Positions 3,798 through 64,000 of a DNA stretch of 64,000 nt are shown here, one piece after another (within the stretch, counting starts at the first letter, position 1; every line of letters starts with the position of its first letter). The notes below the pieces were generated by a model. That model did no database searches, had not been told where the DNA came from, and worked only from the letters and a program-made list of their open reading frames with translations. The DNA is from Mobula hypostoma (lineage: Eukaryota). A program made the position numbers and the translations under genes. The stretch spans positions 30,132,001 through 30,196,000 of the forward strand of contig NC_086101.1 in the NCBI RefSeq assembly GCF_963921235.1, read 5' to 3'.

Positions 3798-3883
3798 GTC
3801 AAAAGCTTCCGCACCGATTCTTTGAGGGTAAAGTGCGACTCGGTTCCGCTCCGGTCTTGGTGAGTCGGTGTGCATAGTTCAGG

Positions 3884-3935
3884 ATGTTCCTGTACGTGCT
3901 CTTGTGTTTCTTCCACTTACAAGTGGTTCTATCCA
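3884..3935 (+). CDS. MHC class I-like exon 1, signal peptide MFLYVLLCFFHLQVVLS
   Basis: ATG at 3884, hydrophobic 17-aa leader, then A|GTAAGT phase-1 donor. A plus TG from exon 2 gives M-SHSL. Lies directly downstream of the X-Y module. Confidence 0.85.
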
Positions 3936-4425
3936 GTAAGTACACTTTTCTAGTTTTATTTATTACTGAATGATGTCCCACCACCGAACAGAAGTGGGCT
4001 CGAAGTTAAAACCGCTTGCGCTCTGTAAAGTGCGGCTGGGGTTTGTGCAAGTGTAGCGTTTAATCTCTTACTTAAGACCGGTCTATCACCAGAACGGAGC
4101 TTCTGTTTTGTTTTTACAACACTTCGGGTTTCATTAGGCATCATTTTACTAGTGCCTAAGACTGAAACAAAAACTGTGCAAGATATTAATTTCTATTTAT
4201 GTAATTTGGGATACGACGTGGAAGATTTGGAGAACCGTGCCTTTCATCTTCATCACTTATAGAACGATATTTGTTGGGAAAATGTTATCACAATGAGAAG
4301 TGAAATTTCTAACTTACAACTATTTTCCATTTCCCCCCATTTACTTAGTGTTTACTTAGTTTGCAGATGACACTAAAATAGTGGTGTCATTACAATGAAG
4401 ATGTCAGGTGTTAGAGAGGGATATT

Positions 4426-14699: not shown

Positions 14700-17600
14700 A
14701 CGTCAGTGGAGAGGTTAGTGAAATGTTATGTGGTACCCTTACATTCATAGTCTGAGATATTGAATAAAGGTTCTGGGATTTCTTGATGCAGCGGCACAAA
14801 ACATTGATTAGGACATACTTCCTTTTTTAGGCTTTTTTGAGGTACTAGACAGGGCTGTCCTTTAAGCCCTTTACTATTTGATATTGCCTTGGAGCCCTTG
14901 GCAATCGCTCTTCGTGATTCACCCGATATATTTGGCATTATTCGTGGGATTGAGACGCATAAGGTATCATTATTTGCAGATGACCTGTTACTATGTATCT
15001 CTAATCCAGAGAAATCCATCCCTGCTGTAATATTACTACTCACTCAGTTTAGTAGTTTTTCTGGTTATAAATTGAATCTCAATAAGAGTGAACTTTCCAT
15101 TAAATATGCAAGTTCCAATCTATAGACAATTACCATTTAGACTGGTTACCGATTATTTTACTTATTTGGGTGTTAAAATTACTAAGAAGCATAAGGATCA
15201 ATTTAAAGTTAACTTTTTACCCTTGATTGATCATGTTAAACAACTGCTTACTAAATGGTCCCCATTGTCCCTATCATTGATTGGTTGAATAATTGCAATT
15301 AAGATGATTATTTTACCTAAATTTCTGTATCTATTTCAGATAGTACCAATCTTCATCTCTAAATCCTTTTTTGATATTATTGATTCTAAAATTTCTTCAT
15401 ATATATGGCAGAATGAAAATCCTAGATTAAGTAAGAAATATTTACAGAATATTGCCAAACTTTGGATTCTATTATTGGGCAATTAATATTTGATATCTAA
15501 TGTTCCGGACACAAGATCTGGATGAAATTCAATGTCCACGATGGGTGAACCTTGAGCGTGAGCCTCTGCAGGGGTTCTCATAGGCTTCTATTTCAGGGGC
15601 TTCGCTTCCCTTTGCGTTTACTAAATTGAATAAACAAACAATCCAATAATTAAACATATAATATGAATATGGTTTCAATTTCATAAATTTTTTGGATTGA
15701 ATAAATTTATTTCATCAAGCCTTATTATATCCAATTTTTTCTTCCAACCATCCAGAACTGATCAAGCTTTTCTTTTATGGAAAACAAAAGGAATAATATG
15801 TTTTCATGATTTATTCATGGATAATTATCTCATGTCCTTTGAACAGTTGTCTAATAAATATAATTTGCATTTATCACACTTTTTCAGTTATTTACAGATT
15901 AGAAACTTTTTGAAGGTTATTTTACCTAGTTTTCCGATATCACATCAAACTGAAATTACAGAAAATTTTTTAGGTTTAAACCCCTATCAGAAGAGTTTAA
16001 TAGCAATTGTTTATGATTTAATTACAAAAATACATTTAGGTATGTCTGACAAACTTAAGGAAGAATGGGAAAGAGAACTTTAGGTACCTTTACACACAGA
16101 AAAATCAGAGAAAATTCTCCAACTAGTCAACACTTCTTCAATGTGTTCTAGACATGCTTTGATACAATTTAAGGTGGTTCATAGTGCTCATATGTCTAAG
16201 GATAAGTTAGCTCATTTTTATGGTCATATAAATCCTGTCTGTGACAGATGAAGTTCTGAGGTAGCTTCCTTGACACATATGTTCCAGTCTTGCCCTCTTT
16301 TGAAAAAATATTGGAAAGAAACTTTTGATATTATGTCAGTAGTTTTGCATATTGATTTACAACCTTATCCTATTATTGCATTTTTTGGATTAACAATAAC
16401 AGACTTTAGTCATTTATCCCCTTCAGCTTGTTGTTTGATTGCATTTCTTTCTTTAATAGCCAGAAAATCCATTTTATTTATACCATATAACAATTACAGC
16501 ATGGAAACAGGCCATCTCGGCCCTTCTAGTCCGTGCCGAACTCTTACTCTCACCTAGCCCCACCGACCTGCACTCAGACCATAACCCTCCATTCCTTTCC
16601 TGTCCATATATCTATCCAATTTAACTTTAAACGACAACATTGAACCTGCCTCAACCACTTCTGCTGGAAGCTCATTCCACACAGCTACCACTCTCTGAGT
16701 AAAGAAGTTCCTCCTCATGTTACCCCTAAATTTTTGCCCTTTAACTCTCAACTCATGTCCTCTTGTTTGAATCTCCCCCACTCTCAATGGAAAAAGCCTA
16801 TCCACGTCAACTCTATCAATCCCCCTCATAATTTTAAACACCTCTATCAAGTCCACCCTCAACCTTCTATGCTCCAAAGAAAAAAGACCTAACTTGTTCA
16901 ACATTTCTCTGTAACTTAGGAGATGAAACCCAGGCAACATTTTAGTATACCTCCTCTGTACTCTCTCAATTTTATTGACATCTTTCTATTAATTTGGTGA
17001 ACAGAACTGCACACCATACTCCAGATTTGGCCTTACCAATGCCTTATACAATTCCAACATTACATCCCAACTCCTATACTCAATGCTCTGATTTATAAAA
17101 GCCAGCATACCAAAAGCTTTCTTCACCACCCTGTCCACATGAGATTCCACCTTCAGGAAACTATGCACCATTATTCCTAGGTCCCTCTGTTCTACTGCAT
17201 TCTTCAATGCCCTGCTATTTACCATATATGTCCTATTTTCAAAATATGTCCTATTTTGATTAGTCCTACCAAAACATAGCACCTCACATTTTTCAGCATT
17301 AAACTCCATCTGCCATCTTTCAGCCCACTCTTCTAACTGGCCTAAATCTCTGTGCAGGCTTTGAAAATCTACTTCATTATCCACAACACCACCTATCTTA
17401 ATATCATCTGCATACTTATTAATCAAATTTACCACCCCATCATCCAGATCATTAATATATATGACAAACAACATTGGACCCAGTACAGATCCCTGAGGCA
17501 CACCACTACACACCATCCTCCAATCTGACACACAGTTATCTACCACTACTCTCCGGCATATCCTATCTAGCCACTGTTGAATCCATTTTACTACTTCGAT

Positions 17601-19280
17601 ATTAATGCCTAACGATTGAACTTTCCTAACCAACCTTCCCTGTGGAACCTTGTCAAAGGCCTTACTGAAGTCCATATAGACAACATCCACCACTTTACCC
17701 TCGTCAACTTTCTTAGTAACCTCATCAAAAAATTCATAAGATTTGTCAAACATAACTTTCCACGCACAAATTCATGTTGACTGTTCCTAATCAGACCCTG
17801 TCTATCCAGATAATTATATTTACTATCTCTAAGAATACTTTCCATCAATTTACCCACCACTGACATCAAACTCTCAGGCCGATAATTGCTGGGTTTACTC
17901 TTAGAACCCTTTTTATACAATGGAACCACTTGAGCAATACACCAATCCTCCGGCACCATCCCTGTTTCTAATGACATTTGAAATATTTCTGTCAGAGCCC
18001 CTGCTATTTCCACACTAACTTCCCTCAAGGTCCTAGGGAATATCTTGTCCGGACCCAGAGACGTATCCACTTTTATATTCCTTAAATGCGCCAGTACTTC
18101 CTCTTCTTTAATCGTCATACTTTCCATAACAACCCTTCTTGTTTCCTTTACTTTACACAATTCAATATCCTTCTCCTTAGTGAATACCAAAGAAAAGAAA
18201 TTGTTCAGAATCTCCCCCATCTCTTTTGGCTCCACACATAGCTGTCCACTCTGATTCTCTAAGGGACCAATTTTATCCCTCACTATCCTTTTGCTATTAC
18301 CATAACTGTAGAAACCCTTTGGATTTATTTTCACCTTACTTGCCAAAGCAGCCTCTTATCTGCTTTTAGCTTTTCTACTTTCGTTCTTAAGATTCTTTTT
18401 ACATTCTTATATTCCTCGAGCACCTCTAACTACAAGCTGCCTATACTTATTGAAGATCCCTGTCTTTTTTCGAACCAAGTTTCCAATATCCCTTGAAAAC
18501 CATGGCTCTCTCAAATTTTTAACCTCTCCTTTCAACCTAACAGGAACATAAAGATCCTGTACCCTCAAAATTTCACCTTTAAATGACCTTCATTTCTCTA
18601 TTACATCCATCCCATAAAACAAATTGTCCCAATATACTCCTTCTAAATCCTTTTGCATCTCCTCAAAGTTAGCCTTTCTCCAATCAAGAATCTCAACACT
18701 AGGTCCAGTCCTATCCTTCTCCATAATTATATTGAAACTAATGGTATTGTGATCACTGGACCCGAAGTGCTCCCCACCACGTACCTTTCCATTTAAATGG
18801 AAAGATTCCAATCCCACTACAACATTTCAATGGTTTTCCCAAACTATAACATGTTTAAATTTGGAAAAAAAAAATTGGGTGTGGTACCATTGATCCTTGG
18901 GCTAAATTTGAAGAAACTTGGAGGCCATTTATTCAATATTTTCATATGATGTAAGTTGACCCTTTCAGAATCCTTTTTAATAACTTTTTGTTTGTGTACA
19001 GAGGAGCGGAGTTAATGACAAATAATGATCTTAACTGATGAAATGTGGCAGCCCAGACTTTGTTTCGTTTTGTCTTTTTTTTAGTGTAAGGTGTAAATTT
19101 TTTTTCATTCTTTTTCATGTTCAGCTAGTAAGAGATTGGGAGGTTTAAATTAAATATGTTACTCTGAGTCTGTGCCTGTATACGTTAGCTGTTATTAATG
19201 TAATCCTGATCTGTTTGTATCATGATCATTGTTATGTTTATCAATTTGAAGCTCATTAAAAAAGATTGAAAAAGAAAGGA
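14700..19280 (+). mobile_element. L1-clade LINE ORF2 3' half, split by a CR1 insertion
   Basis: GTRQGCPLSPLLF, KVSLFADDLLL, FSGYKLNLNKS, HMFQSCP. Resumes after about 18790 with FKWKDSNP...W..F and a 3' UTR. Confidence 0.85.
16478..18790 (-). mobile_element. CR1 LINE ORF2 (5'-truncated) inserted in L1
   Basis: YMDFSKAFDKVP, GVPQGSVLGPMLF, KYADDIKIGG; 3' end at about 16478. Confidence 0.9.
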
Positions 19281-24469: not shown

Positions 24470-26369
24470 TGCTTTAACCTGAGTCCAGTGTTTCCACTGG
24501 CTGCCTCACCGAGTCTGCACACAGGCACACGTATCATTGGTTAAGTGTACCGTCTGTGGTCCTAACCACCTGGGGGAAAACCCCGGCCTTTCTGGCAGCA
24601 CCCTCACATTGACTTGGTCACTGGGCTGTGGAAGGACTATCTCCTTTCCCTCTGGCTCCCTGATCAGCGATTCGCTGCTATTGTTTCACTCAGTCCTTCA
24701 ACACTTTTAAGTTGGTTACAAAGGTCTTTCGCATATTGTGTCATTCTATCCCTGTAAGCCCCAGGCTCCCCGCAACCCACAATTACCCCATAGGGGAGTT
24801 GCATTGCTCGCCCCATCAATAATTCGTAGGAGCTGAGACCCAATGTGTGGTTCGGGGTTGCACGCATCAGGATTCCTAGTAATACATCAACCCATGTCTA
24901 TCCTGTCTTTCCTGTCTCAGCTATAGCTTTGACTAACACATTCTTGATTGTTCGGTTCATCCTTTCTACCATTCCTGAACTCTGGGGGGTGGTAAGGTAC
25001 ATGGAACTGTTGTCAAATCCCTAGCAGTCAGCACATTTCCTTCATGACTTTCCCCGTGAAATGTGGTCCCTGATCTGAATCCACCTGGACTGGAGTTCCT
25101 CACCTTGGGAGGATTTCCTGAGCTAGGATCCATGCAGCAGTCCTTTGTTGGGAAAGCCTTTATCCACCAGGTGAAGTGATCCATTATTACAAGACAGTAG
25201 CTTTTCCCCCTGCTCTTTGGCAGAGACCCTGTGAAGTCTATCTGGATGTTTTCCCAGTGTCCCCTCAGCCGAGGCTGATTTGCCAGCTGTAGCTTTCTGC
25301 CCTTACCAGGGTTATGCTGGGCACAAATGATACAACAACTACAGAATTTCTCAACATCCCTGCGCATCCCTGGCCACCACCAGTCCTGCCGGAGGGTTGT
25401 GATCATGCTTGGCCTTCCCTGATGCATTGCCCCATGGTATAACTTCAATAGTATCTGCCTAATACATAGTGGGGCCACCGTGACTCCTTCCTCTCCGTGT
25501 GTCCAGCACTCGTCTGGTCCCTCCTTTGCCCGTTTTCTCCTCCATTTTTCCTTCTCTTCTGCCTCCACCTCTTCATAGAATTTTACTAAATTGGCTTCTC
25601 TCGTTCCTTCCTGCAGGCTTCCAATTTCAATTGCCTCTTGTTCCTCTGCTGCCTTCTTCGCAGCAACATCTGCCCACTCATTTCCGTTCCGTTTCATGCT
25701 CTCACCTTTCTGGTGTTTTTGTTTCTTTGCTGTACCCTGAACAGTGGTCAGTGCATCAGTGTTTATAGAGTACTGCTTCTGGGGTTTATACAGACCTTCC
25801 TCTATTTTAACTGGGTTTATCTTTACTCGACCACAATCTTGCTTGTGTCTAGCCCACACTGCTGGGAACTGCTGACAAAGTAACCCATAGACACCATCCT
25901 GGCTCCAGTCTCTGGTGATCGGGGCAGCTGCGACTACACTAGCCAGGTTGTGTATTCTGTTGGTTGTATGCGTTTGCTGCCTCTGAATTGTCCATATTAT
26001 TTCTCGCTTTCCCGAATCTTTAACAGCTCCTGCTTCCCTTAGGATGTCTATTCCAAGGATAGTGCTCTGGATATTTGGGCATACTCAGAAATACACTGGA
26101 AACTGCACTGCCCCGATTTCTAGTATTTGTGACTCACTTCTCTGTTTTCCATCTTACTTCCCTAATATAAATGGCCTGTCCGGTTGTTGGCAAGGGTAAG
26201 TCTGTTATCGATACCGATGCCCCTGTGTCCACTAAAATATTGCATTGCTGTCCCCCTAATGTTGCTGTTGTGTATATCCCCGGGTCACCAGCGCTGGTAG
26301 TGGGGCCCGCCGCCACATCTTTTTCTGACCTAGGAGTTGTCTTTACTTGCTCTATGATCTGATTGACAG
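24470..26369 (-). pseudogene. pol: ERV pro-pol remnant lacking RT core
   Basis: PR, then FPAVWARHKQDCGRV..KQYSI joined directly to the RNase H tail and integrase; stops and frameshifts are present. Confidence 0.8.
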
Positions 26370-27243
26370 TCAGAGTGGAGTGAGAGATTGTGTGTCTGCT
26401 GTGAAGTTCACCTGTTTTTCTTTCCTCTGTTTTGTGCACTGCCTCCAACCAGGTCCCAATAGGCCGCACTTGTAGCATATCAACTTCTTTACCCTCCCAC
26501 GTTTATTCCAGCAATTCCTTGCTTCGTGCCTTGACTGTCGGCAAGCAAAACAAACCCACTGGGACATCACAGCAGCTGCATCCACTATAGCCACTTTACG
26601 ATCTCTCTTGCACTTTCTTCGGTTTATCTCACTGGCCCAGAAAACTATCGCAGAGTAGGTCAACCCCACCATTATGACTAAATCTAAAACTTCCTGATGG
26701 ACTGAGCTCAGGCCTTCCTTCAGCATTTTCAGGAAGACTGGGTCGTCCCTCCTTGGATTATCCAACTCTGAATACTCCTCATATGCCCAATACTTATGTT
26801 CTGCATGATCCATAGCCGCCTCATCAGCGTTTTGAATCACTGCCGTTATCATTCCCCAGTTACGCTCACCTCCCCCCAGTCACTGCCTCACTTCCATATT
26901 TAAGAAAAGCATTATTTTTCTTTATTGTTGGCATTCCCATAGTTGTCCTGGTACCACCCCACACCCCTTGGGCCATCCTGTCCCACATATTCCTCGGGCA
27001 CTTCTCTTTTAACAGCACGTGTACATCTTTAGGGTGCATCTGGTGAATTTCAACCATTTCCTCAAGCTTACGCCAGAATTCTGAATTCCCACATGTGACT
27101 TTACGTGAGGGCAAATTAGACAAAATGCTCTGTTTCTCCCCAGGGGTGAAGGGCTTATGAATGGTCGTAATCAAGGTCAAGGGCTGGCTCAGATCATCGG
27201 GGTTCTCAAAAGACGGGTACCAGTTAAACAACACATACTTCAA
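26370..27243 (-). pseudogene. gag: ERV gag (capsid, MHR-like, two zinc knuckles), frameshifted
   Basis: KLEEMVEIHQMHPKDVHVLL; IQNADEAAMDHAEHK MHR-like; CFACRQSRHEARNC and CYKCGLLGPGWRQC. Confidence 0.75.
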
Positions 27244-27245
27244 AC

Positions 27246-28140
27246 CGCAGAGTATGTGTTCAGCAGTCCAGAGATTACTATCTTGGAGGTCCTGTTTTTC
27301 AATGATTTACCTAAAATAAAGTCTCTCTTCAGGACCTCCTCACCTTTCCTACCCATGCAATTAGTGCGAATATGTACCAAGACCTCTGGCTGCTCCCCCC
27401 CACCCCCACCCACTTCTTTCAGAATGCCAGGACCCGAGCTGAGACATCCCTGTCCCTGACAGTTTGGAGGCAATATGCCATCTAGGTGTCTCTGTCGCTC
27501 CCACAGAATCTCATCTCTGTTCCTCTGACTATGGAATCTCCTATCACCACTCTTCACTCTTTACCAGTGCCCATGGTAAATGCTACAGATGCAATTACTG
27601 CACTTTCCCCCTTGTAGGTCATCCTTCTGAAATTTATCCAAAGTGATGTACCTAATATTGAGGGAAACAGCACAGAGGTACTCCACACTGGCTACCCATT
27701 CCCCTTCCTCCTCCTGATAGTCACGCAATTACATGCCTCCTTCAAGCTAGAGGTGACTACCTCCCATTAGGTCCCATTTATCACTTCATCAGTCTCCCGT
27801 ATGAGCCAAAGTTCACCAAGCTGCACCTGTGGTTCCTTAACACTTTCTGTGAGGAGTTGTGGCTTGGTGCACCTGGTGCACATGTGTTTAGCTGGGAGGC
27901 TGGAGGTTTTCCAGAATTCGCACATCTCATCCACAGAACAAAACCCTTCCCTCGAGTCATTCTCACTGCACTAGCTGTGCCCTAGCAGTGATGGAATGAA
28001 AAAATAAAGAGGCCCAAGACTGACCTCGCCTAAGCTTGCTAAGTCAAATCCACTCCAACGCTGGCTCACTCGCACAATACTTCGTATGCGCCTGTCTTAT
28101 TTTTATTCATCCTTTCTAATTAATCCACTTCACCGATTGG
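27246..28140 (-). mobile_element. CR1 5' portion (5'UTR, ORF1 zinc finger/SGNH)
   Basis: VIGDSIVRGT...EQPEVLVHI.TN..RTSKIVISGLL SGNH motifs. Confidence 0.75.
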
Positions 28141-33869: not shown

Positions 33870-34130
33870 TGTCTCACTCACTGATCTATTACTACACTCT
33901 GAATCATGGAAATGCTGATCTACCTGAGTATAGTGTCGTCGGTGACCTGGATGGTTGTGAGATCCAGTATTATGACGCAACCATGGAAATGACAGTCCCA
34001 AGACAAAAATGGATGGCGGCTGCATTTGACAAGTCTTATTGGGCAAAAGATACAATGACTGAACATAGTATCCATGGAATCATAAAGGGGCAAGCTATAG
34101 AATGGCTGCAGCAGCATAACGAAAGTACAG
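33870..34130 (+). CDS. MHC class I-like exon 2, alpha1 domain
   Basis: ttccctctag|..|gttagt; (M)SHSLIYYYT..PEYSVVGDLDG..YYD..PRQKWM..YW..HNESTG; 261 nt; N86 sequon NES. Confidence 0.95.
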
Positions 34131-34869
34131 GTTAGTCTATCCAGTTGAATGAATGTGGAGGGGGTTCTAGGTCAATGCGAATGAACATGTGAATAAAAAA
34201 CACAGATGCTGGAAATCTGAAATGGCATGAAATAATTGCAGAGTTGGATGCCCAAGCTATGGTGCACTAAGTATTTTGAAGGTCAGACATAACAAAACTT
34301 GGGCAATTGATTTACCAGTAACTCCCACTGTAAGTTGTGAAATTCATTCTGCCACAGCTGACATTGACTGACACTGATGTTGTATAACTGATTATTTTTC
34401 ATAATGTTGCTTTTTATCATGTGATATTTTGTTATGTATTCAGCAAATCTTTACTGAAGTAGTATTTAACTCTGGACAGATTGAGAAAGATTCATATCTG
34501 CGGCAAATTATTATTGGTTGGTCACAACTTCTATCAACATTCAGATCTAGTAGTAATATAAATTTTATTTAACAATAAGACAATCATTGAATTATTATCA
34601 GGTTCATTGAGTAATTGAGAGAACAATATCAATCATTATTAAATATACCATTTTTATATGCTTTATTCACGGTGGACATTTAATCTACAGCAGACGTACG
34701 TTTGATAGCTTATAGAGCTATTAGTTTATAGCTCCAGTTACATAAGCTCAATGCTGCCCTCTAGTGCTACCTCTGTGGAGTCTGCATTTTCTTCATGTGA
34801 CCACATTGCTGCCTTGCTTTCCTACAAGTCCCCAAAAGCATGCAGGTCAGTAGGTTATAAATATGTGAT

Positions 34870-35195
34870 TCTATAGATGCTGGAAATCTACAACAGCACT
34901 CTCAAAATGCTGGAGGAACTCAGCAGGCCAGGAAGCTTTTATGGAAATGAATAAACAGTTGACCTTTCGGGCTGAGGCCCGTCATCAGGACTAGAGAGGG
35001 AAGATGCCAGAATAAGAAGGTGGGAGGCGGGCAAGGAATTCAAGCTTAGAGGGTTGTAGATGAAGACAGATGGGTTGGAGAGTGGAAGTGAAGTGCTGTA
35101 AGAAGCTGGGAGATGATAGATGGAAAAGGTACAGGGCTGGAGAAGAAGGAATCTGAAAAGACAGAAAAGTGGACCATGGGGGGAAAAAGACCATA
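34870..35195 (-). mobile_element. Penelope pLTR/3'UTR, degenerate hammerhead
   Basis: atagatgctggaaatct..gctggaggaactcagcaggcc..tttcgggctgaggcccgtcatcaggact. Confidence 0.7.
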
Positions 35196-35569
35196 AGATG
35201 TCAAAATTGAAAGCATATTTATTATCAAAAAATGTGTAAATTAAATAACCTTGACATTTGTCTGTTTACAGGCAGTCACAGATCAGGAAACCAGAAAGAA
35301 CGCAATTTTGAAAAAGGACCAATACCTAATGTGCAGATAGAGAAAGAAAACACACAAATGCAAACAATAAAGCAATCAACAGCATTCAAAATTAAATTTA
35401 GCCCATAGGTGTGATGCCTGGAGTAGGCTCATAGCCTCAGTCTCAAATCATCACTCAGTGGGGCAAATTGGCACAATGCTCACAGACATGAAGCTCAGAG
35501 CAGGGTACAGCCTCAGCGCTGAGGACAGCAAAGCAAACGCCACAGAGTAAATGTATAAAAACACATGGC

Positions 35570-36385
35570 TTTAAGTGAAATTCTGAATCCAGCTGTCTTT
35601 GGTAGCCTCCAGTGAGGTTTCATCACTTTTTGCCTTCTGATCAATTGTTGATGCTGGTAGCACACTCACTTGAGCACCTGTGTCACATTAAAGCATTGCC
35701 CTGAAAGGGTGTCTGTAATGAACAGTAGATGACACTGGCAGCTGGAACGCACAGTGTTCACAGACCTCTGAAGTCACAGTGCACTGGCACTGTTGAAGCT
35801 GCAAGGCAGTTGGCACATACTCGAGTTCATACCAAAGCAAGCATGGCAAAAGCACAGACCCAGAGTTTTCTGCTTCACAGCCAGGGGTGTGTGTGTGCTG
35901 GAGGCCCTGCTGACCAGGCTTATTGAGGCAGGGAAAAGGAGAGGAATTATGCATCTCTGCCTGGATGTGTTTGGACTATCAGGCATTTTAGCAAGCTTCC
36001 TATAGTCCTCCGTGCATGCATTAGTGGGGGCCATGTGAACTTGATCAAACATTGGCTGCATAAAGGGTTCTTTAAAAATTAAACAAGGATAGTGATTTCC
36101 CAGAAGAGACTGTATGTAGTCCATTAGTTCTGAAGGCTGAGCATCTCCCAGGCATCTGTTTGGTATGCTGGAGTTCAATAAGCCCAAAGTTTGTAAAAGG
36201 CGAGCTTTCAGGCTGGTATTCAAGTAAGCACACTACTCTCACAGACGTGGAACTACTGAGTGATGCTACTATGTAGCAATATTTGGTGTCGCATGCAGAG
36301 ATCGGGCTTCAGCGTGCGCAAACTAAGCAGCAGCATTTCATTCCCAAACTCCAGCAACTTCAAAGAAATGCATTAGCTGATGTGT
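35570..36385 (-). mobile_element. Gypsy gag-protease fragment
   Basis: SLKL.EFWE; LGDAQPSELMDYIQSLLGNHYPCLIFKEPF; CFCHACFG..CQLPC; with a frameshift, CDTGAQVSVLP. Confidence 0.75.
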
Positions 36386-36427
36386 GTTCAATTACTCTGG
36401 AATAGTCCTACAGCATTGGGGTCAACA

Positions 36428-37136
36428 CTTCACCTGTGAGTTGACTGGGGTGATATACTGCGTCCGGTGCTCCTGATGTGGCCTTTTATATATTGGCGAG
36501 ACCCAACGCAGACTGGGAGACCGCTTTGCTGAACATCTACGCTCTGTCCGCCAGAGAAAGCAGGATCTCCCAGTGGCCACACATTTTAATTCCACATCCC
36601 ATTCCCATTCTGATATGTCTATCCACGGCCTCCTCTACTGTAAAAATGAAGCCACACTCAGGTTGGAGGAACAACACCTTATATTCCGTCTGGGTAGCCT
36701 CCAACCTGATGGCATGAACATCGACTTCTCTAACTTCCGCTAATGCCCCACCTCCCCCTCGTACCCCATCTGTTACTTATTTTTATACACACATTCTTTC
36801 TCTCACTCTCCTTTTTCTCCCCCTGTCCCTCTGTATATACCCCTTGCCCATCCTCTGGGTCCCCCCCCCCCGTTGTCTTTCTTCCTGGACCTCCTGTCCC
36901 ATAATCCTCTCATATCCCTTTTGCCTATCACCTCTCTAGCTCTTGGCTCCATCCCTCCCCCTCCTGTCTTCTCCTATCATTTTGGATCTCCCCGTCCCCC
37001 TCCAACTTTCAAATCCCTTCCTCACTCTTCCTTCAGTTAGTCCTGACGAAGAGTCTCGGCCTGAAACGTCGACTGCACCTCTTCCGAGAGATGCTGCCTG
37101 GCCTGCTGCGTTCACCAGCAACTTTGATATGTGTTG
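36428..37136 (+). mobile_element. 5'-truncated Penelope (GIY-YIG plus pLTR), 10-bp TSD
   Basis: VIYCVRCS*CGLLYIGETQRRLGDRFAEH; TSD ggggtcaaca at 36418-36427 and 37137-37146. Confidence 0.9.
37039..37074 (+). ncRNA. Minimal hammerhead ribozyme motif, one stem II mismatch
   Basis: AGTC CTGACGA AGA-GTCTCGG-CCT GAAA CGTC GACT. Confidence 0.6.
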
Positions 37137-37389
37137 GGGGTCAACAGTGTAGGTTTTCAGAAATAAAACAGCAGATTTGAAGGAAGCTGTAACAACTCAT
37201 TATTGTCTTCCAAACACAGAACATACTGCACAGTAAAACACTTCATGTAATTGGGGTATCATGTCAGACAATCCTTCTAAATTGAACGCCAACTCAATGT
37301 TGGTGGTTGTGAATCATGCAGGTTTCACTGATTACATTACCCTACAGTGCCACCTTAAACTGCAAGTACATATAGGGAATATGAGGTGT

Positions 37390-38320
37390 TGCTCCTACAA
37401 CCTGAAAGTAGCCTCATCATGGCAGAAATGAAAGTCATGGACTGATATATGGGAATGGATATAGAAATGAAAATAGTTATGGACCAGGAAATCACACATT
37501 TTGCAAATGGAACAGAGGTGCTTCAGAAAGCAGTCCCCATCTATTTGGAGTCTCACCAGTGTAGAGCAGGACTCATTGGGAGCATCTGATACAATAGATA
37601 ACCCCAAAAGTTACACAGGTGAAGTGCTGCCTCACCTGGAAGGACTGTTTGGTGCCTGGAATGGAGGTGAGAGAGGATGTGAATAGGCATGTTTAACACT
37701 TCTGCCCTTGCAGGGATTAGTGCCAGCAAAGAGATTAATGTGGAGGCATGAGGGTGGTGGCAAAGCATTTTAATTCCTATTTCATTCCCATTCCATTATG
37801 GCAATCTTTGGCCGCCTTGTCTGTGACAATGTGGCCATTCTCAGTTTGGAGGAGCAGCACATCATATTCTGGCTGGGTAGCTTCAAACATGATGCCATGA
37901 GCATTGATTTCTTTAAGTTCCAGTAATTTCTTTCACCCTCCCTTCCCTCCTCTTCAATTCCACACACTGGCCTGTTATCTGTTCTCCATACCTATCTACC
38001 ATCTCCCCCAGTTCCCTTCTTCCTTCCCTTTCACTCGTGGTCCACTTTCCTCTCCTATCAAGTTCCGTCTTCTCCAGTCCTTTGCCTTTTCCACCCATCA
38101 CCTTTCCAGCTTCATACTTCAACCCCCTCCCCAATCCACTTGGCTTCACGTGTCCCCATCCAGCTTGTTCTCTTTCCCAACCCTAAATCCTATTCTGGCA
38201 TCTTCCCCTTTCCTTTCCAGTCTGAATGAAGGATCTTGGCCGGCTATGTTGACTGTTGATTCATTATCATAGATGCTGCCTGACCATCTGCATTCCTCCA
38301 GCATTTTCCATATGTTGCTC
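37390..38320. mobile_element. Old Penelope with internal inversion
   Basis: GIY-YIG remnants on both strands, followed by a decayed pLTR. Confidence 0.55.
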
Positions 38321-38589
38321 CAGGTCAGTAGGTTAATTAATGACTAAATTTCCTCTAGTGTAGTTTGGTAGGTTAAAAGGCACATTATTGGAGGAATGGA
38401 ATTACTCAATCAGATAGCTTGGATCTAGTGAGTTGAATGGCCTCATTCTACATCATATAAAACAAGGACTGTTATCCTTGAGGAATTCTCTTTTTGTTTA
38501 GTGTGGGCAGCAGTGTAAAATTAAATTTGTTACCCAATCACTTTGTTAAAACTGTGCTAACTTCATGTGTATGAAAGTCAGGTAATTTA

Positions 38590-41500
38590 TGCTTTAGAGA
38601 GCCAAAGCAACGAAAAGTCATGATACATGTTGGTACCAACGACATAGGCAGGAAGAGGGATGAGGTCCTGAAGTATGAGTTTTGGGAACCAGGCAGAAGG
38701 CTGAAGAAAAGGACCTCAAGTGTGGCTTTCTCAGGATTGCTGCCAGTGCTATGTGACGGTGATGGTTATAATTGAAGGAGATGGCAGTTGAATGCGTGGC
38801 TAAGGAATAGGTGCAGGGAGCAGGGTTTTAGATTTTTTGGATCATTGGGATCTCTTCTGGGGAAGGTGGAACCTGTACAGATTGGATGGGTTGCACCTGA
38901 ACTCAAGGGGGAGCAATATCCTTGCAGGTAGGTTTGCTAGCATGGGTCGGGAGGGTTTAAATTAAATTTGAAAGGGGGATGGGACCTGGAGCGATAGAGC
39001 AGTGAAAGAAGTGCATGGGGGAAAGCCAGATCTAACATACAGAGAGGCTTTGAGGAAAGAGAAGCAGAATAAACGGTGTAAAGACAGTAAGGCAGAAGGG
39101 CTGAAATCCATGTACCTCAATGCAAGAAGCATCAGGAACAAAGGTGATGAACTGAGAGCTTGGATACATACATGGAATTATGATGTAGTGGTCATTACAG
39201 AGACTTGGCTGGCACCAAGGCAGGAATGGATTCTCAATATTCCTGGATTTCAGTGCTTTAAAATGGATAGAGGGGGGAGAAAGGGGAAGTGGGCGGCATT
39301 ACTGGTCAGGGATATTATTACAGCTACAGAAATGATGGGTAATGTAGCAGGATCCTCTTTTGAGTCAGTATGGGTAGAAGTCAGGAACAGGAAGGGATCA
39401 GTTACTCTACTGGGGGTATTCTATAGGCCCCCTGGTAGCAGCAGAGATACAGAGGAGCAGATTGGGAGGCAGATTTTGGAAATGTGCAAAAATAACAGGG
39501 TTGTTATCATGGGTGACTTAAACTTCCCTAATATTGATTGGCACCTGATTAGTTCCAAGGGTTTAGATGGGGTAGAGTTTGTTAAATGTGTCCAAGACAG
39601 ATTCCTCTCACAGTATGTGGACAGGCCAATGAGGGGGAATGCCATACTAGATCTAGTACTAGGTAATGAACCGGGTCAGGTCACAGATCTCTCAGTGGGT
39701 GAGCATGGGGGACAGTGACTACTGTTCTCTGGCCTTTAGCATTATCATGGAAAAGAATAGAATCAGAGAGGACAGGAAAATTTTTGATTGGGGAAGGGCA
39801 AATTATGAGGCAGGTGTGAATTGGGATGATACTTTTGCAGGGAAATGTACTATGGTAATGTGGTTGATGTTTAGAGATCTCTTGCAGGATGTTAGGGATA
39901 AGTTTGTCCCAGGGAGGAAGGTAAAGAATAGTAGGGTGAAGGAATCATGGGTGACAAGTGAGGTGGAAAATCTAGTCAGGTGGAAGAAGGCAGCATACGT
40001 CAGCTTTAGGAAGCAAGGATCAGATGGCTCTATTGAGAATTTTAAGGAAGCAAGAAAGGAGCTTATGAAGGGGCTGAGAAGAGCAAGAAGGGGGCATGAG
40101 AAGGCCTTGACCAGTAGGGTAAAGGAAAACCCCAAGGCATTCTTCAATTATTTGAAGAACAAAAGGATGACAGGAGTGAAGGTAGGACCAATTATAGATA
40201 AAGGTGGGAAGATGTGCCTGGAGGCTGTGGAAGTGAGTGAGGTCCTCAATGAATACTTCTCTTCGTCTTCGTATTCACCAATGAGAGGGAACTTGATAGT
40301 AAGGGCAATATGAGTGAGGTTAATGTTCAGGAGCATGTTGATATTAAGGGACAGGAGGTGTTGGAGTTGTTAAAATACATTAGGATCAATAAATCCCCAG
40401 GGCCTGAAGGAATATTCCCCAGGCTGCTCCATGAGGCGAGGGAAGAGATTGCTGAGCCTCTGGCTAGGATCTTTATGTCCTCATTATCCACGGGAATGGT
40501 ACTGGAGGAGTGGAGGGAGGCGAACGTTGTCCCCTTGCTCAAAAAAAGTAGTAGGGATAGTCCGGGTAATTATAGACCCGTGAGCCTTATGTCTGTGATG
40601 GGAAAGCTATTGGAAAAGATTCTTAGAGATAGGATCTATGGGCATTTAGGGAAACATGGTCTGATCAGTGACAGTTAGCATAGCTTTGTGAAGGGCAGAT
40701 CGTGTCTAACAAGCCTGATAGAATTCTTTGAGGAGGTGACCAGACATATAGATGAGGGTAGTGCAGTGGATGTGATCTATATGGATTTTAGTAAGGCATT
40801 TGACAAGGTTCTACACGGTAGGCTTATTGAGAAAGTCAGAAGGCATGGGATCCAGGGAAGTTTGGCCAGGTGGATTCAGAATTGGCTTGCCTTCAGAAGG
40901 CAGAGGGTCATGGTGGAGGGAGTACATTTAGACTGGAGGATTGTGACTAGTGGTGTTCCACAAGGATCTGTTCTGGGACCTCTAATTTTCATGATCTTTA
41001 TTAACGACCTGGATGTGGGAGTAGAAGGGTGGGTTGGCAAGTTTGCAGACAACTCAAAGGTTGGAGGTGTTGTAGATGGTGTAGAGGATTGTTGAAGATT
41101 GCAGAGAGACATTGATAGGATGCAGAAGTGGGCTGAGAAGTGGCAGATGGAGTTCAACCCGGAGAAGTGTGAGGTGGTACACTTTGGAAGGACGAACTCC
41201 AAGGCAGAGTACAAAGTAAATGGCAGGATACTTGGAAGTGTGGAGGAGCAGGGGGATCTGGGGTTACATGTCCACAGGTCCCTGAAACTTGCCTCACAGG
41301 TAGGTAGGGTAGTTAAGAAAGCTTACGGGGTGTTAGCTTTCATAAGTCGAGGGATAGAGTTTAAGAGTCGAGAAGTAATGATGCAGTTCTATAAAACTCT
41401 GGTTAGGCCACACTTGGAGTGCTGTGTCCAGTTCTGGTCACCTCACTATAGGAAGGATATGGAAGCATTGGAAAGGGTACAGAGGAGATTTTCCAGGATG

Positions 41501-41930
41501 CTGCCTGATTTGGACAGTATGCATTATGATCAGAGATTAAGGGAGCTAGGGCTTTACTCTTTGGTGAGAAGGAGGATGAGAGGAGACATGATAGAGGTGT
41601 ACTAGATAATAAAAGGTATAGATAGAGTGGATAGGCAGCGCCTCTTCCACAGGGCACCACTGCTCAATACAAGAGGACCTGGCTTTAAGGTAAGGGGTGG
41701 GAAGTTCAAGGGGGATAGTGGAGGAAGGTTTTTCTACTCAGAGAGTGGTTGGTGCGTGGAATGCACTGCCTGAGTCAGTGGTGGAGGCATATACACTCTG
41801 AAGTTTAAGAGACTACTAGACAGGTATATGGAGGAATTTAAGGTGGGGGCTTATATGGGAGGAAGGGTTTGAGGGTCAGTACAACTCTGTGGTCCGAAGG
41901 GCCTGTAATGTGCTGTACTATTCTATGTTC
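38590..41930 (+). mobile_element. CR1 LINE: ORF1 3' part and nearly complete ORF2
   Basis: MYLNARSIRNK..ITETWL, GDLNFP, YMDFSKAFDKV, GVPQGSVLGP, KFADNSK; tail ctattctatgttc. Confidence 0.92.
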
Positions 41931-42590
41931 AAACACATCCCCATGTGTGAATAAGTCTGCATGTAAACTACAGATGTGGAGTAGCAGTTATTAATGATGC
42001 CGCTGCCTCACATTCCAATAACCTGAGGCCAATTCTGCCTTCTGATTCTGATGTCCATTTTGCCAGGTTAAATGGGAACTGTTGATGTAGAGAGTTGGTA
42101 GGTATATAAGAGTGAAATCGGTGGGATGATATCATTGCAGCATCAACTTGAAGAAGCATGAGACTAGTTTAGATGAACGTGTTTGATTTCTTGGATCATT
42201 TTCGCAGGAGGGCTTTTTTAAGTGCTATATGACCTGATGAACATGTGATTGCATTGACTCCCTCTGCTCAGAAGAAAGACTTTTAAGTTGTCTGCTCCAT
42301 TTTGTAACTTCTGCACGTGAGGGAATCAATTTAATTTCCTGTGACCCTGTTAAATTAGGTGTCTTGTGTGAGATATTTGGCACAGTTTTCACCCTGGTTA
42401 AGCTCAGAGTGAATTGACAATTCATCTTGCATCATCTTTGTTGATTTATAGAGGGAACAGTGACAAATAATATTTGTCATTAAAGAAAATTGTATTGGCA
42501 TTGATATAAGATTGCAGCATGTATTTCTGACTGACCTTGGTGCTTATTTTTCACTATCTCCCATGACTCTATGTAACAATGTTTATTTCA

Positions 42591-42777
42591 ACACTCACAA
42601 CACGCTGGAGGAACTCAGCAGGTCGGGCAGCACCCGTGGAAAAGATCAGTCGATGTTTCGGGCCGGAGCCCTTCATCAGTCCTGATCGTTTCCACAGATG
42701 CTGCCCGACCTGCTGAGTTCCTCCAGCGTGTTGTGAGTGTTGCTTTGACCCCAGCATCTGCAGATTATTTTGTGTTT
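42591..42777. mobile_element. Hairpin Penelope pLTR derivative (subfamily B), 13-bp TSD
   Basis: TSD aatgtttatttca at 42578-42590 and 42778-42790; inverted arms of about 60 bp (about 42589-42649 and 42682-42742). Confidence 0.8.
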
Positions 42778-42946
42778 AATGTTTATTTCAGGTACTTAAA
42801 TTGGTTCCCATTCTTAATATGAAAGGATTATCTGTGTGAAATTGAACATTCTCCATGGGGCTGGCGGGGGGAAGGTTTGTGTTTTAACCCAGGTACTCGT
42901 ATATTGTCCAGATGTAATAGTTAATGAATGGTTAATTTTCTTTCAG

Positions 42947-43222
42947 GTTATCACTACCTACAAGGGCAGTTTGGTTGTCAGCTGAATGATCATAGTCCCA
43001 ACGTAGGGATACTGAAGTTGGCTTACGATGGAAAATACATACTTAGCTTTGATAAAGACAAACTGGAGTGGATTGCACATGATCCAGTATTTCAGCCCTT
43101 CAAAAAGAAATGGGATAAAAATGAAAGAATGAACAAATATTTCAAGAACTTGTTAGAAAAGGACTGTGTGGGACTATGCAAGGACTATTATGCAGTTGGA
43201 AAAACATACCTGACCCGAAAAG
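42947..43222 (+). CDS. MHC class I-like exon 3, alpha2 domain
   Basis: ttttctttcag|..|gtgagt; GYHYLQGQFGC..AYDGK..W..KKKWD..EKDCVGLCKDY; C101/C164 pair; 276 nt. Confidence 0.95.
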
Positions 43223-57915: not shown

Positions 57916-60066
57916 CTAGATCTAGTAGTAGGTAGTGAACCGGGTCAGGTCACAGATCTCTCAGTGGGTGAGCATCTGGGGGACAGTGATCACCGCTCCC
58001 TGGCCTTTAGCATTATCATGGAAAAGAATAGAGTCAGAGAGGACAGGAAAATATTTAATTGGGGAAGGGCAAATTCTGAGGTTATAAGGCTAGAACTTGT
58101 GGGTGTGAATTGAGATGATATTTTTGCAGGGAATTGTACTATGGACATGTGGTCAACATTTAGAGATCTCTTGCAGGATGTTAGGGATAAATTTGTCCCG
58201 GTGAGGAAGATAAAGAATGGTAGGGTGAAGCAACCATGGGTGACAAGTGAGGTGGAAAATCTAGTCAGGTGGAAGAAGGTAGCATATATGAGGTTTAGGA
58301 AGCAAGGATCAGATGGGTCTATTGAGGAATATAGGGAAGCAAGAAAGGAGCTTAAGAAGGGGCTGAGAAGAGCAAGAAGGGGGCATGAGAAGGCCCTGGC
58401 GAGTAGGGTAAAGGAAAATCCCAAGGCATTCTTCAATTATGTGAAGAGAAAAAGGATGACAGGAGTGAAGGTAGGACTGATTAGAGATAAAGGTGGGAAG
58501 ATGTGCCTGGAGACTGTGGAAGTGATCGAGGTCCTCAATGAATACTTCTCTTCGGTATCCACCAATGAGAGGGAACTTGATGATGGTGAGGACTATATGA
58601 GTGAGGTTGATGTTCCAGAGCATGCTGATATTAAGGGAGAGGAGGTGTTGGAGTTGTTAAAATACATTAGGATGGATAAGTCCCCGGGGCCTGATGGAAT
58701 ATTCCTCAGGCTGCTCCACATGGTGAGGGAAGAGATTGCTGAGCCTCTGGCTAGGGTCTTTATGTCATCGTTGTCCACAGGAATGGTACCAGAGATTTGG
58801 AGGGAGGCAAATGTTGTCCCCTTGTTCAAAAAAGGTAGTAGGGATAGTCCGGGTAATTATAGACCAGTGAGCATTATGTCTGTGGTGGGAAAGCTGTTGG
58901 AAAAGATTCTTAGAGATAGGATATATGGACATTTAGAGAATCATGGTCTGATCAGGGACAGTCAGCATGGTTTTGTGAAGGGCAGATCGCGTCTAACAAG
59001 CCTGAAAGAGTTCTTTGAGGAGGTGACCAGGCATATAGATGAGGGTAGTGCAGTGGATGTGATCTATATGGATTTTAGTAAGGCATATGACAAGGTTCCA
59101 CGTGGTACGCTTATTCAGAAAGTCAGAAGGCATGGGATCCAGGGAAGTTTGGCCAGGTGGATTCTGAACTGGCTTGCCTGCAGAAGGCAGAGGGTCATGG
59201 TGGAGGATTGTGACTACTGGTCTCCCATAAGGATCTGATCTGGGACCTCTACTTTTCATGATTTTTATTAATAACCTGGATGTGGGGGTAGAGGGGTGGG
59301 TTGGCAAGTTTGCAGATGACGCAAAGGTTGGTGGTGTTGTAGATAGTGTAGAGGATTGTTGAAGATTGCAGAGAGACATTGATAGGATGCAGAAGTGGGC
59401 TGAGGAGTAGCAGAAAGTTGCCTCACAGGTGGATAGGGTAGTTAAGAAAGCTTATGGGGTGTTAGCTTTCATAAGTCGAGGCATAGCATTTAAGAGTCGT
59501 GATGTAATGATGCAGCTCTATAAAAAACTGGTTGGGCCAAACTTGGTGTACTGTGTTCAGTTCTGGTCGCCTTAATATAGGAAGGATGTGGAAGCATTGG
59601 AAAGGGTACAGAGGAGATTCACCAGGATGCTGTCTGGTTTAGAGAGTATGCATTATGATCAGAGATTAAGGGAGCTAGGGCTTTACTCTTTGGAGAGAAG
59701 GAGGATGAGAGGAGACATGATAGAGGTGTACAAGCTAATAAGGGGAATAGATAGAGTGGATAGCCAGCGCCTCTTCCCCAGGGCACCACTGCTCAATACA
59801 AGAGGACATGGCTTTAAGGTAAGGGGTGGGAAGTTCAAGGGGGATATTAGAGGAAGATTTTTTTACTCAGAGTGGTTGGTGCATGGAATGCATTGCCTGA
59901 GTCAGTGGTGGAGGCAGATACACTAGTGAAGTTTAAGAGACTACTAGACAGGTATATGGAGGAATTTAAGGTGGGGGCTTATATGGGAGGCAGTGTTTGA
60001 GGGTCAGCACAACATTGTGGGCCGAAGGGCCTGTGCTGTGCTGTGCTATTCTATGTTCTATGTTCT
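57916..60066 (+). mobile_element. CR1 ORF2, 5'-truncated; same subfamily as 38590-41930
   Basis: 365-aa ORF at 58141-59238 with NYRPVS and YMDFSKAYDKVP; tail ttctatgttctat. Confidence 0.92.
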
Positions 60067-60069
60067 ATA

Positions 60070-60791
60070 ACCAACATTTTGCAGCTGTACATTGATAGGA
60101 TGCAGACTGTGCTGAGAGGTGGCAGATGGAATTCAAGCTGGAAAGGTGTGAGGCGATATACTTTGAAAGGACAGACGAATGCAGACTACAGGGTTAATGG
60201 CAGGATTTTTCACTTGTTAAAGCAACAGAGGAATCTTTGAGTTTTCAACCATAGATCACCCAAATTCACCATGGAATTTGATGGGGTGTATAAGAAGGCA
60301 TGTAGTGTGCTGGCCTTAATTAGTTGAGAAATTGATTTCAAACAGAGGATATTTACTAGGATGCTGCCTGGATTACAGATCATGTCTTATGAAAAATGTG
60401 GCATGAACTTTTCACTTTTGAGCAAGGGAGAATGAAAGCTGTCTTGATAAGATGACAGAGTGGGAAAGCAGCCCCTTTTTCCTGGGGAGGGGGTGTAATA
60501 GTTAATATGGGTGCTCATAATTTTAAGATGTTTGGAGGAAAGTATAGTGGGGAGGTCAGTAGTTTTTTTTTACACAGGGAGCAGTGGGTGCGTGGAATGT
60601 GTCACTAGATATTGCGGTAGATACAGATACATTTTGGACATTTAAGATTCTCATAGGCATAGAAAGGCAGATGGAAGGCAATATGGGTGGGAACCATTAG
60701 ATTGATCTTGGATAGATTAAAATATTAACACAAAATTATGGAAAAAAGGGCACATATACTATATACTATTTTTTTCTGTTCTATGTTCTAT
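60070..60791 (+). mobile_element. Old CR1 3' fragment ending just upstream of the alpha3 acceptor
   Basis: Decayed RT C-terminus and 3' UTR ending ttttttctgttctatgttctat. Confidence 0.7.
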
Positions 60792-60798
60792 CATGTAG

Positions 60799-61065
60799 TT
60801 GTTCCTGAGGTCTTTCTTAATGCACAGAAGCGCGATTACTGGTTTCTCCAATGCAGCGTATTTGGGTTTTATCCAACGGCCATCAAAGTGAGCTGGTTCC
60901 AGAATGAGAAACATGTCTCTGAGACAAAATCTACTGGAGTATTACCAAATGAAGATGGAACATATCAACTGCGGTCTGTCCTTGATATTGATCCATTTGA
61001 TGGCAAAAAGTATTACTGCCATGTCAATCATAGTAGCATGCCGGATGGGAAGACAGTCATCTGGG
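60799..61065 (+). CDS. MHC class I-like exon 4, alpha3 (C1-set Ig)
   Basis: catgtag|..|gtaagg; LQCSVFGFYP..VSW..LPNEDGTYQL..YYCHVNHSS; 267 nt. Confidence 0.95.
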
Positions 61066-61847
61066 GTAAGGACATTCATATCTGAGCAGATAGAATAAGT
61101 TTTAGAACTATTAATAACAGAGTTTATCATTATCATTTCCTATTTCCTTTTTAATCCTCCAGACTGCATCCTGTATTCTAATTCCTTTGAATCTTGTTTA
61201 TACTAATATATTGAGTAGTCTTCCATGTTGCTGATGAACGAAAGCAAAAACTGTAACAATTTATAATTCCCATCTTCCAATGTTCATCACAGTGTAAATT
61301 TCTGTCCTTTGCTTTACACAACATTTAGTTGTACATCAGACATTGGTACCACGAATGCAACTTGTTCCAGTTGTTACTCATCTGAAATTGAAAGAAGTAT
61401 TATCAAATGTATTGAACCAAGAATGCTGTGAGAATGGAGAGAGAAGCCCTGTCATATTTTGTAATTATTGAGGTTTTAATTAAATGTTAGAAAATAAACT
61501 ATCTTTAATCAACTGAATTAGCCACCAAAGTGTAATTGATTTATCTATTTATAAGCCCTGGATAAAATGTTCAATTGGATTGTTAAGTGCATAATATTTT
61601 TATCACAAATGCTGGGTACGATCATGCCCATCAAGTGGTAATCTGGCTACCTTTTGATATAAAATGCCATTGCCATTAAATACTGCCCCACAGTTGGCCT
61701 CTTGCATTAACCATGGTGCAAAACCTTAACTGGACTAAGTGTTTAAAGCAAACAACAGGAATTCTGCAGATGCTGGAAATTCACGCAACATACATCAAAG
61801 TTGCTGGTGAACGCAGCAGGCCAAGCAGCATCTATAGGAAGAGGCGC

Positions 61848-61883
61848 AGTCGACGTTTCAGGCCGAGACCCTTCGTCAGGACT
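61848..61883 (-). ncRNA. Minimal type I hammerhead ribozyme, intact core
   Basis: The reverse strand reads AGTC CTGACGA AGGGTCTCGGCCT GAAA CGTC GACT. Confidence 0.75.
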
Positions 61884-61986
61884 AACTGAAGGAAGAGTGA
61901 GTAAGGGATTTGAAAGCTGGAGGGGGAGGGGGAGACTCCCCCTCCCCCTCCAGCTTTCAAATCCCTTACTCACTCTTCCTTCAGTT

Positions 61987-62022
61987 AGTCCTGACGAAGG
62001 GTCTCGGCCTGAAACGTCGACT
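61987..62022 (+). ncRNA. Minimal type I hammerhead ribozyme, intact core
   Basis: AGTC CTGACGA AGGGTCTCGGCCT GAAA CGTC GACT; predicted cut after 62018. Confidence 0.75.
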
Positions 62023-62339
62023 GCGCCTCTTCCTATAGATGCTGCTTGGCCTGCTACGTTCACCAGCAACTTTGATGTATGTTGCTTAAGTGTTTAAAGC
62101 TGTGGTTATCTTACCCAGTCAGTAGCCAATAACTTACACATGATATGCTAAAGCCCCTCCACTATCTTCATGGTTCAAGCAGCACAAAACCATGAGGCCT
62201 GATTTCTACTGTGTGTGTGAAGCCACAAATTTTTTGCTTCCACGTATGTAGTGTGCACTGTCTATAAAATACACTGCAGTCATTTGCCTAGGCTACTCTA
62301 GCAACAAGAAGCAAATATATGACCAGTACAACCATGTAC

Positions 62340-63260
62340 GATGAAGGCATAGAATATAGCATGTTACAGTAGAGACCATGCACTACAGCTCATGATGTTG
62401 AGTGCCAGTTTTAACCTACTCCATCATCAACCTTGCCCTTCCCTGTAACATAGCCCCACGTTTTCCTATCACATGTGCCTATCTAGGATACTTTTAATTA
62501 TCCTTAATGTATCTACCTCTAGTACCACTCCATGACAGCATATTCCATGTAATCAACGACTCCTTTATAAAGATCACAAAGAGCAGATATCCTAAAACAG
62601 TTTCCTGCAGGAAATTATTGGTCACCAGCCTCAGGACAGAATATGCTTCATCTACAGTGACTTATTGTCTTCTATTGGCAAGCCAATTTTGTATCCAAAC
62701 AGACCGGCTTCCCTGTATCCCATGCTTCCAGACTTTCTGAACAAGCCTACAATTTGGAACCTTATCAACTGCTTTACTAAAATCCATAAGCATCCTATCT
62801 ACTGCTCTGCCTTCTCAATGTGCTTTGTCACAACTCCAAAAAATTCAATCAGCTTTGTGAGGTATGACCTGCTCCTCATAAACCCATGTGTCTCCAAATA
62901 CTCATCCTATATCTCAGAACATTTTCCAAAGGCCTGTCCACATCAGATGTCAAACTCACTAGTCTATAACTTCCAGGGTTATCTGTACTCCCTTTCTTGA
63001 ACAAAAGAATATTTGCCAAGCCTCCCTCATCTCGTCCTATTACTGCTTCCAGTGAGCACGCAAAAACATCACAAAAAGTGTATCAATCTCCTCCTTCATT
63101 TCCCATAGTAACCTGGGGTATACCACCATCCAGCCCCAGGGACTTATCTATCCCAAAGTTCTTCAGAAGTTCCAGTGATTTCACTTAATATGAGTATGGT
63201 CAGACATATCATCATGTCCTTGCACTACCCTCACAATCATCAAGTTGCCTCTCACTGGTG
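62340..63260 (-). mobile_element. Decayed CR1 fragments
   Basis: Reverse complement of the CR1 3' end and RT region (ataaacccatgt.., tctataacttccagggtt). Confidence 0.55.
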
Positions 63261-63846: not shown

Positions 63847-63954
63847 ACGGCAGTGGGAAGAAGGACAGGCACATTGGGTTGATCGGTGTATGTATTCTTT
63901 TATTGCTGAGTACTATCCTTGCAGGAATTTATTGCTGGACAAAGAAGAGAAGCG
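63847..63954 (+). CDS. MHC class I-like exon 5, connecting peptide/TM
   Basis: atttttcag|..|gtaaga; DGSGKKDRH-IGLIGVCILLLLSTILAGIYCW-TKKRS. Confidence 0.9.
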
Positions 63955-64000
63955 GTAAGATGAAATTGCTAATGAAACCATTGACTTTGAAGAAAATGAT

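Follow-up and report, generated by a model that had tools for sequence, protein, structure and literature searches.

What kind of class I molecule of the major histocompatibility complex (MHC) is encoded on contig NC_086101.1 of the devil ray Mobula hypostoma (NCBI RefSeq assembly GCF_963921235.1), and what does its groove hold? The window analysed here is the whole stretch of 64,000 nucleotides from position 30,132,001 to 30,196,000 of the forward strand, and all coordinates below are counted from its first base. A preliminary description, confined to positions 33870-43222, had recognised an intact non-classical class I gene with a hydrophobic groove, a candidate receptor for lipid, lipopeptide or another hydrophobic ligand, and had left room for a new lineage. 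To judge from its sequence and its place in the tree, the gene is the M. hypostoma orthologue of shark UGA, an old non-classical class I lineage of sharks and rays, and its product probably binds a lipid or similar hydrophobic ligand and not an 8-11-mer peptide.

The structure of the gene is readily recovered from the forward strand (Table 1). Pfam recognises both groove domains and the immunoglobulin-like alpha3 domain; every exon is open, in phase 1, and bounded by an AG acceptor (a polypyrimidine-AG at the three class I domain exons) and a GT donor. The leader exon, located by tblastn with the Mobula birostris orthologue (16/17 identity), lies 30 kb upstream of alpha1, and its last base joins the first two bases of alpha1 to make the codon ATG. 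In the product of the last exon within the window, a connecting peptide is followed by 23 hydrophobic residues and then by a basic stop-transfer stretch, while the final 13 residues of the tail, DYENIRAHRNVNC, are encoded past the window end, by one or more cytoplasmic exons beyond base 64000. Over residues 1-320 the spliced model agrees at every position (100% identity) with the RefSeq protein XP_062904350.1 (P0166 in our set), which was named automatically as "MR1-like" or 'MHC class I-related gene protein-like'; the leader matches its N-terminus exactly. The conceptual product is a 334-residue type I membrane heavy chain with a signal peptide, an alpha1/alpha2 groove domain, an Ig-like alpha3 domain, a transmembrane segment and a short tail, in which the C101-C164 pair and the two alpha3 disulfide cysteines are all invariant across a 60-sequence alignment. 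The exons are thus open and spliceable, as first described, and both alpha1 and alpha2 fall inside the span originally delimited; the whole gene is far larger, running from about 3.9 kb to past the window end (69.8 kb in the annotation). When the window was searched by tblastn with the M. birostris orthologue and with proteins of a sister lineage, only the UGA exons were matched and no further class I exons were found.

The assignment to UGA is drawn from structure comparison and phylogeny. Chain A of PDB 9CH4, entitled 'Crystal structure of shark nonclassical MHC CLASS I, UGA' and released on 2026-03-18, is the top match to every domain (E-values in Table 1), against 9e-12, 8e-15 and 7e-20 for the next match to alpha1, alpha2 and alpha3 respectively. 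An AlphaFold2 model of the ectodomain, built from the 60-sequence alignment, has class I secondary structure with a predicted local distance difference test score (pLDDT) of 93 and a predicted template-modelling score (pTM) of 0.83, and is nearly superimposable on the solved shark UGA (Z 30.1, root-mean-square deviation 1.8 Å over 267 residues, 59% identity). Shark and ray proteins of the family were gathered with HMMER, in an exhaustive search starting from alpha1, and then by word-based matching, and a maximum-likelihood tree was inferred from 58 ectodomains under LG+C20+F+G4. In this tree, which contains no named UFA references, 9CH4 is not itself included and is represented by a zebra-shark (Stegostoma) protein, P0159, to which it is a near-identical full-length match (E 7e-170). 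Nineteen shark and ray rows, including both P0159 and the window protein, form a UGA clade with support of 100/99*. Within its batoid subclade (100/100*) the nearest neighbour of the window protein is that of M. birostris, followed by those of the stingrays. The remaining shark class I groups, classical UAA among them, fall elsewhere. The branching order of sharks and rays is broadly that of the species, as expected of orthologues, with local duplications in Pristis and in Pristiophorus, each of which has three copies, against one M. hypostoma protein in the 90% identity cluster. The tree and the structural model, both of which the preliminary description had proposed, therefore put the gene outside UAA and give it a class I fold, and the suggestion of a new lineage must be given up, since the lineage is already named by the title of 9CH4, the clade is strongly supported and the protein is already in RefSeq.

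The automatic label deserves separate comment. A resemblance to MR1 exists in alpha2, where MR1 scores slightly above classical class I (E 8e-15); this signal is far weaker than that to UGA, however, with an E-value of 1e-53 as against 7e-170 for the zebra-shark orthologue, and is about level with classical class I. The position equivalent to K43 of MR1, placed by landmark alignment, does not appear to be a lysine in UGA, and according to a 2025 review cartilaginous fish lack MR1 (PMC12562908). The RefSeq label "MR1-like" of the Mobula gene should read UGA. The same label has been given to the nearest clade, a sister elasmobranch lineage (the P0007/P0194 group), whose union with UGA is supported at 100/99*. 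The two are about 41% identical and have L159, F156, Y155, M152 and an FHGI motif in common, but the sister proteins make up their own clade, carry H59, F7, C99, R146 and L143, and have a more hydrophobic set of groove residues (mean hydropathy 1.54).

In proposing what the groove might hold, we need to consider which of the classical anchor residues survive. Positions were numbered by alignment to the classical shark UAA of Triakis scyllium (P0026) and by the landmarks of the N86 sequon, C101, Y118-D-G, W147 and C164; HLA-A2 itself was not used. The residues reported in the preliminary description were nevertheless all recovered by this route, namely the retained anchors Y7, Y59, K146, W147 and Y171, the replaced anchors 84Q (R in UAA), 123I, 143F (T in UAA), 159L (Y in UAA) and 167L (W in UAA), and the hydrophobic or aromatic floor and helix positions L5, Y9, Y22, V24, I70, I73, I74, W81, L95, F99, L114, L116, F140, M152, Y155 and F156. 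Most of these are characteristic of the lineage: across the 19 shark and ray sequences, L5, Y9, F99, L114, F156 and L159 are invariant, and W81, Y155, L160 and L167 are nearly so. The full classical set (Y7, Y59, R/Y84, T143, K146, W147, Y159 and Y171, plus W167) is broken in Mobula by 84Q, 143F, 159L and 167L.

It is very improbable, in our judgement, that such a protein is a classical or classical-like peptide-presenting class I molecule. Classical UAA (Triakis P0026; nurse shark PDB 6LUP) has the same domain plan, both disulfides and the N86 sequon, and the five conserved residues that bind the peptide termini are kept in UGA, as that explanation would predict; but the two are only about 33% identical, R84, T143, Y159 and W167 are all replaced, and UGA forms a clade distinct from UAA with full support. 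Moreover, the M. hypostoma and M. birostris proteins are unlike at just 9 of 267 ectodomain positions, none of them a listed hydrophobic groove position. The original description of an intact, non-classical class I gene that has lost classical anchors is borne out, about half of the peptide-terminus anchors being replaced.

Our preferred reading is that Mobula UGA, like shark UGA, would pair with beta2-microglobulin and would hold a lipid or other hydrophobic ligand in its groove in place of an 8-11-mer peptide. The clamp for the peptide C-terminus (positions 84 and 143) and half of that for the N-terminus (159 and 167) are lost through replacement with Q, F, L and L, and hydrophobic residues conserved in the lineage (L5, Y9, F99, L114, Y155, F156, L159, L160 and W81) line the floor and helix faces. 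A juxtamembrane YENI, of the YxxΦ type, would direct the molecule to endosomes, where it would be loaded much as CD1 is, after which the ligand would be shown to T cells. Taken as a whole, we consider this account likely. It agrees with the same 2025 review, which says that, on crystallographic and mass-spectrometric evidence, UFA and UGA seem to bind lipids of a kind comparable with the ligands of human CD1d (PMC12562908), and UFA, a new elasmobranch class Ib lineage, has been called CD1-like (PMC10751288). A full-text literature search found no primary paper on 9CH4, and mentions of UFA and UGA only in passing.

Several points weigh against this account. The statement on UGA lipids in PMC12562908 is a personal communication of unpublished data. 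The groove does seem more hydrophobic than a classical one, yet only moderately so by a crude mean: Kyte-Doolittle hydropathy averaged over 49 groove positions is 0.73 in Mobula and 0.95 in the zebra-shark orthologue, against 0.26 in UAA and 0.06 in a sturgeon class Ia. The earlier claim of a hydrophobic-ligand receptor agrees with the published report, and the contrast with UAA is modest. The residues that bind the peptide termini in classical class I (Y7, Y59, Y171, K146 and W147) are all retained. Finally, we infer beta2-microglobulin pairing, endosomal routing and T-cell recognition by homology.

The tail invites comparison with CD1. CD1 tails carry a tyrosine signal of the YxxΦ type that routes CD1 through endosomes, and a YxxΦ lies just past the membrane in 13 of the 18 listed tails of the UGA clade, as YENI, YESI, YQTI, YNVI, YNTV, YNAV or YNVV. 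It may be observed that the Mobula sequence SDYENI, which is conserved across UGA orthologues, matches the consensus of an immunoreceptor tyrosine-based inhibitory motif as well as that of a YxxΦ sorting signal. With the CD1 of mammals, birds and reptiles, UGA would also have in common lipid display, a hydrophobic groove and perhaps a low copy number. The similarity does not extend to specific sequence kinship: CD1 is absent from the 60 best PDB matches of alpha1 or alpha2 and is matched only through the Ig-like alpha3, and in structure chicken CD1-1 is no better a match than classical class I. UGA further differs from CD1 in keeping Y7, Y59, Y171, K146 and W147, and its lineage is reported to be MHC-linked.

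With these five residues retained, the groove could also accommodate a ligand whose head group is polar or peptidic, such as a lipopeptide. A related explanation is therefore that UGA presents lipopeptides or acylated small ligands, with the acyl chain buried while Y7, Y59 and Y171 together with K146 and W147 grip the polar or peptide part, as chicken YF1*7.1 does with N-acylated amino acids and peptides. Nearly all members of the clade retain the A-pocket tyrosines and K146/W147, and the close structural matches include YF1*7.1 bound to N-myristoylated or N-palmitoylated ligands (Z 26.2-26.6). Classical peptide-binding structures, however, score equally well, which means that the ranking of folds does not discriminate, and the sole report on UGA ligands is of CD1d-like lipids (PMC12562908). 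We regard this explanation as unlikely.

Still less probable is a class I-like molecule that presents no ligand at all and acts as a receptor ligand or transport protein, in the manner of HFE, FcRn or ZAG. HFE and zinc-alpha-2-glycoprotein do appear in the sequence and structure matches, and molecules of this kind typically lose their peptide anchors too. Yet the groove-facing positions are strongly conserved across the shark and ray clade, a sign that a binding site is under selection; the solved orthologue is reported with lipid (PMC12562908); and a YxxΦ tail suits an antigen-sampling route. Lipid or hydrophobic-ligand binding is thus the reading that we retain.

If Mobula UGA is to be understood through the shark structure, the differences between them need to be considered as well. 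Both belong to one clade and have in common FHGIIKGQ in the alpha1 helix, W81, F99, F143, Y155, F156, L159 and L167, as well as a YxxΦ tail, judged in the shark from the zebra-shark near-homologue of 9CH4; 34 of the 49 groove positions are the same in Mobula and in that 9CH4-like protein. Position 123 is I in Mobula and A in most sharks, but I also occurs in 2 of the 9 shark copies, and the Mobula tail is longer, with RAHRNVNC following YENI. A further difference sets the copies of Myliobatiformes, the stingrays and devil rays, apart from all shark copies, namely the substitutions F70I, A140F, W168C and Y/C/F/A63D. Mobula and Hemitrygon have the complete set as a fixed feature, and Hypanus lacks only F at 140, where it has Y; position 69 is S instead of G in 4 of 5 myliobatiform copies. 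These substitutions suggest that the stingray and devil-ray groove has been remodelled and might carry hydrophobic ligands of another class than those of the shark UGA that was crystallised, an idea that we hold to be doubtful.

Two cysteines occur in the Mobula ectodomain beyond the canonical four, at residues 29 and 164 of the ectodomain (about 31 and 168 in HLA-style numbering). The first, in LDGCEI, is kept in nearly all UGA sequences, while C168 is found only in stingrays and devil rays; every shark copy, and almost every copy from the other batoids, has a conserved tryptophan there. Lying near the N-terminal end of the groove, C168 could serve in covalent or redox-dependent capture of a ligand.

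The UGA gene is transcribed in two Mobula species. Contigs from public RNA runs were compared with positions 60500-64000 of the window; their depth is unsuitable for ranking expression. Contigs of 647 and 1089 nt, from two runs of one organism, run from alpha3 straight into the transmembrane exon without a mismatch, joining 61064 to 63846 and skipping 2781 nt with GT..AG ends at the predicted sites; an exact junction across this intron can only derive from spliced RNA. In the longer contig 642 nt precede alpha3, a length compatible, as far as length alone can tell, with a 5' untranslated region, the leader, alpha1 and alpha2. The alpha3 and transmembrane exons show no variation in the contigs of these two runs. 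In the runs of a second organism G60834A, A63894G and A63912G are seen, the changes behind the D191N, I-to-V and T-to-A substitutions by which the M. birostris protein differs. A contig in one of these runs, X3, spans the alpha3-transmembrane junction, so that this species, too, transcribes and splices UGA.

Other features within the gene span are largely unconnected with its product (Table 1). Two isoforms of M. birostris, X1 and X2, include an extra exon whose homologue in the window has an in-frame TAG and lacks an AG acceptor, which means that an isoform of this type cannot be made in this genome; the exon may be an annotation artefact in M. birostris. Directly upstream of the leader, at 3760-3800, are a TGACG (X2/CRE-like), a TATATAG and CTGATTGG, an inverted CCAAT of Y-box-like form. 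Since the CTGATTGG octamer occurs in the window at chance frequency (4 found, 3.9 expected), these motifs are merely a lead for a class I-type promoter, and we do not claim one. In intron 4, positions 61670-62137 form a long palindrome that is covered by dozens of contigs from all four RNA-type runs, with a summed depth of about 1e5 and many variant letters; this depth and variation indicate that the stretch belongs to a transcribed repeat family of very high abundance. Rfam gave only sub-threshold generic hairpin (miRNA-precursor) matches there, on both strands, and no hammerhead family up to an E-value of 1.

Table 1. Positions of the UGA exons and of other features in the 64,000-nucleotide window (LINE, long interspersed nuclear element; ORF, open reading frame).
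Feature	Position	Strand	Remarks
Leader (signal-peptide) exon	3884..3935	+	ATG at 3884; encodes MFLYVLLCFFHLQVVLS and one base of the next codon; donor A|gtaagt
Homologue of extra exon (YDVEDLENRAFHLHHLQN; also RYDVEDLENRAFHLHHLQNV) of M. birostris isoforms X1/X2	4212..4265	+	In-frame TAG, no AG acceptor
LINE reverse-transcriptase fragment	16554-18346	-	
Retrotransposon in intron 1	24966-27557	-	Integrase zinc-binding (H2C2) and neighbouring gag/protease-like ORFs
Alpha1 exon	33870..34130 (261 nt, phase 1)	+	Pfam MHC_I E 3e-07; PDB 9CH4 E 4e-37; N-E-S sequon at N86 position
LINE fragment in intron 2	39002..41605	+	Endonuclease and reverse-transcriptase ORFs; Pfam Exo_endo_phos, RVT_1; outside gene product
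Alpha2 exon	42947..43222 (276 nt, phase 1)	+	Pfam MHC_I E 2e-13; PDB 9CH4 E 1e-31; C101-C164 pair
LINE reverse-transcriptase fragment in intron 3	58141 to ~59238-59926	+	Pfam RVT_1
Alpha3 exon (Ig C1-set)	60799..61065 (267 nt, phase 1)	+	Pfam C1-set E 1e-17; PDB 9CH4 E 8e-31; RNA contigs, 0 mismatches
Connecting-peptide/transmembrane exon	63847..63955 (phase 1)	+	Encodes D-GSGKKDRHIGLIGVCILLLLSTILAGIYCWTKKRS; P0166 residues 286-320; RNA junction

The gene is already present in RefSeq and belongs to a lineage that has been named, whose crystal structure has been released and which is reported to bind lipid, so that what we describe is largely known and adds little to the biology. Apart from the groove substitutions of stingrays and devil rays, nothing in the Mobula gene departs from that lineage. 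A reading of the raw sequence alone was nonetheless enough to recover a 70-kb, five-exon immune gene and to arrive at a sensible view of its function. To this we have added the name UGA for the Mobula gene, its transcription in two Mobula species and the retention of YxxΦ in most copies of the clade, together with a set of groove substitutions in stingrays and devil rays that can be compared against the shark structure.

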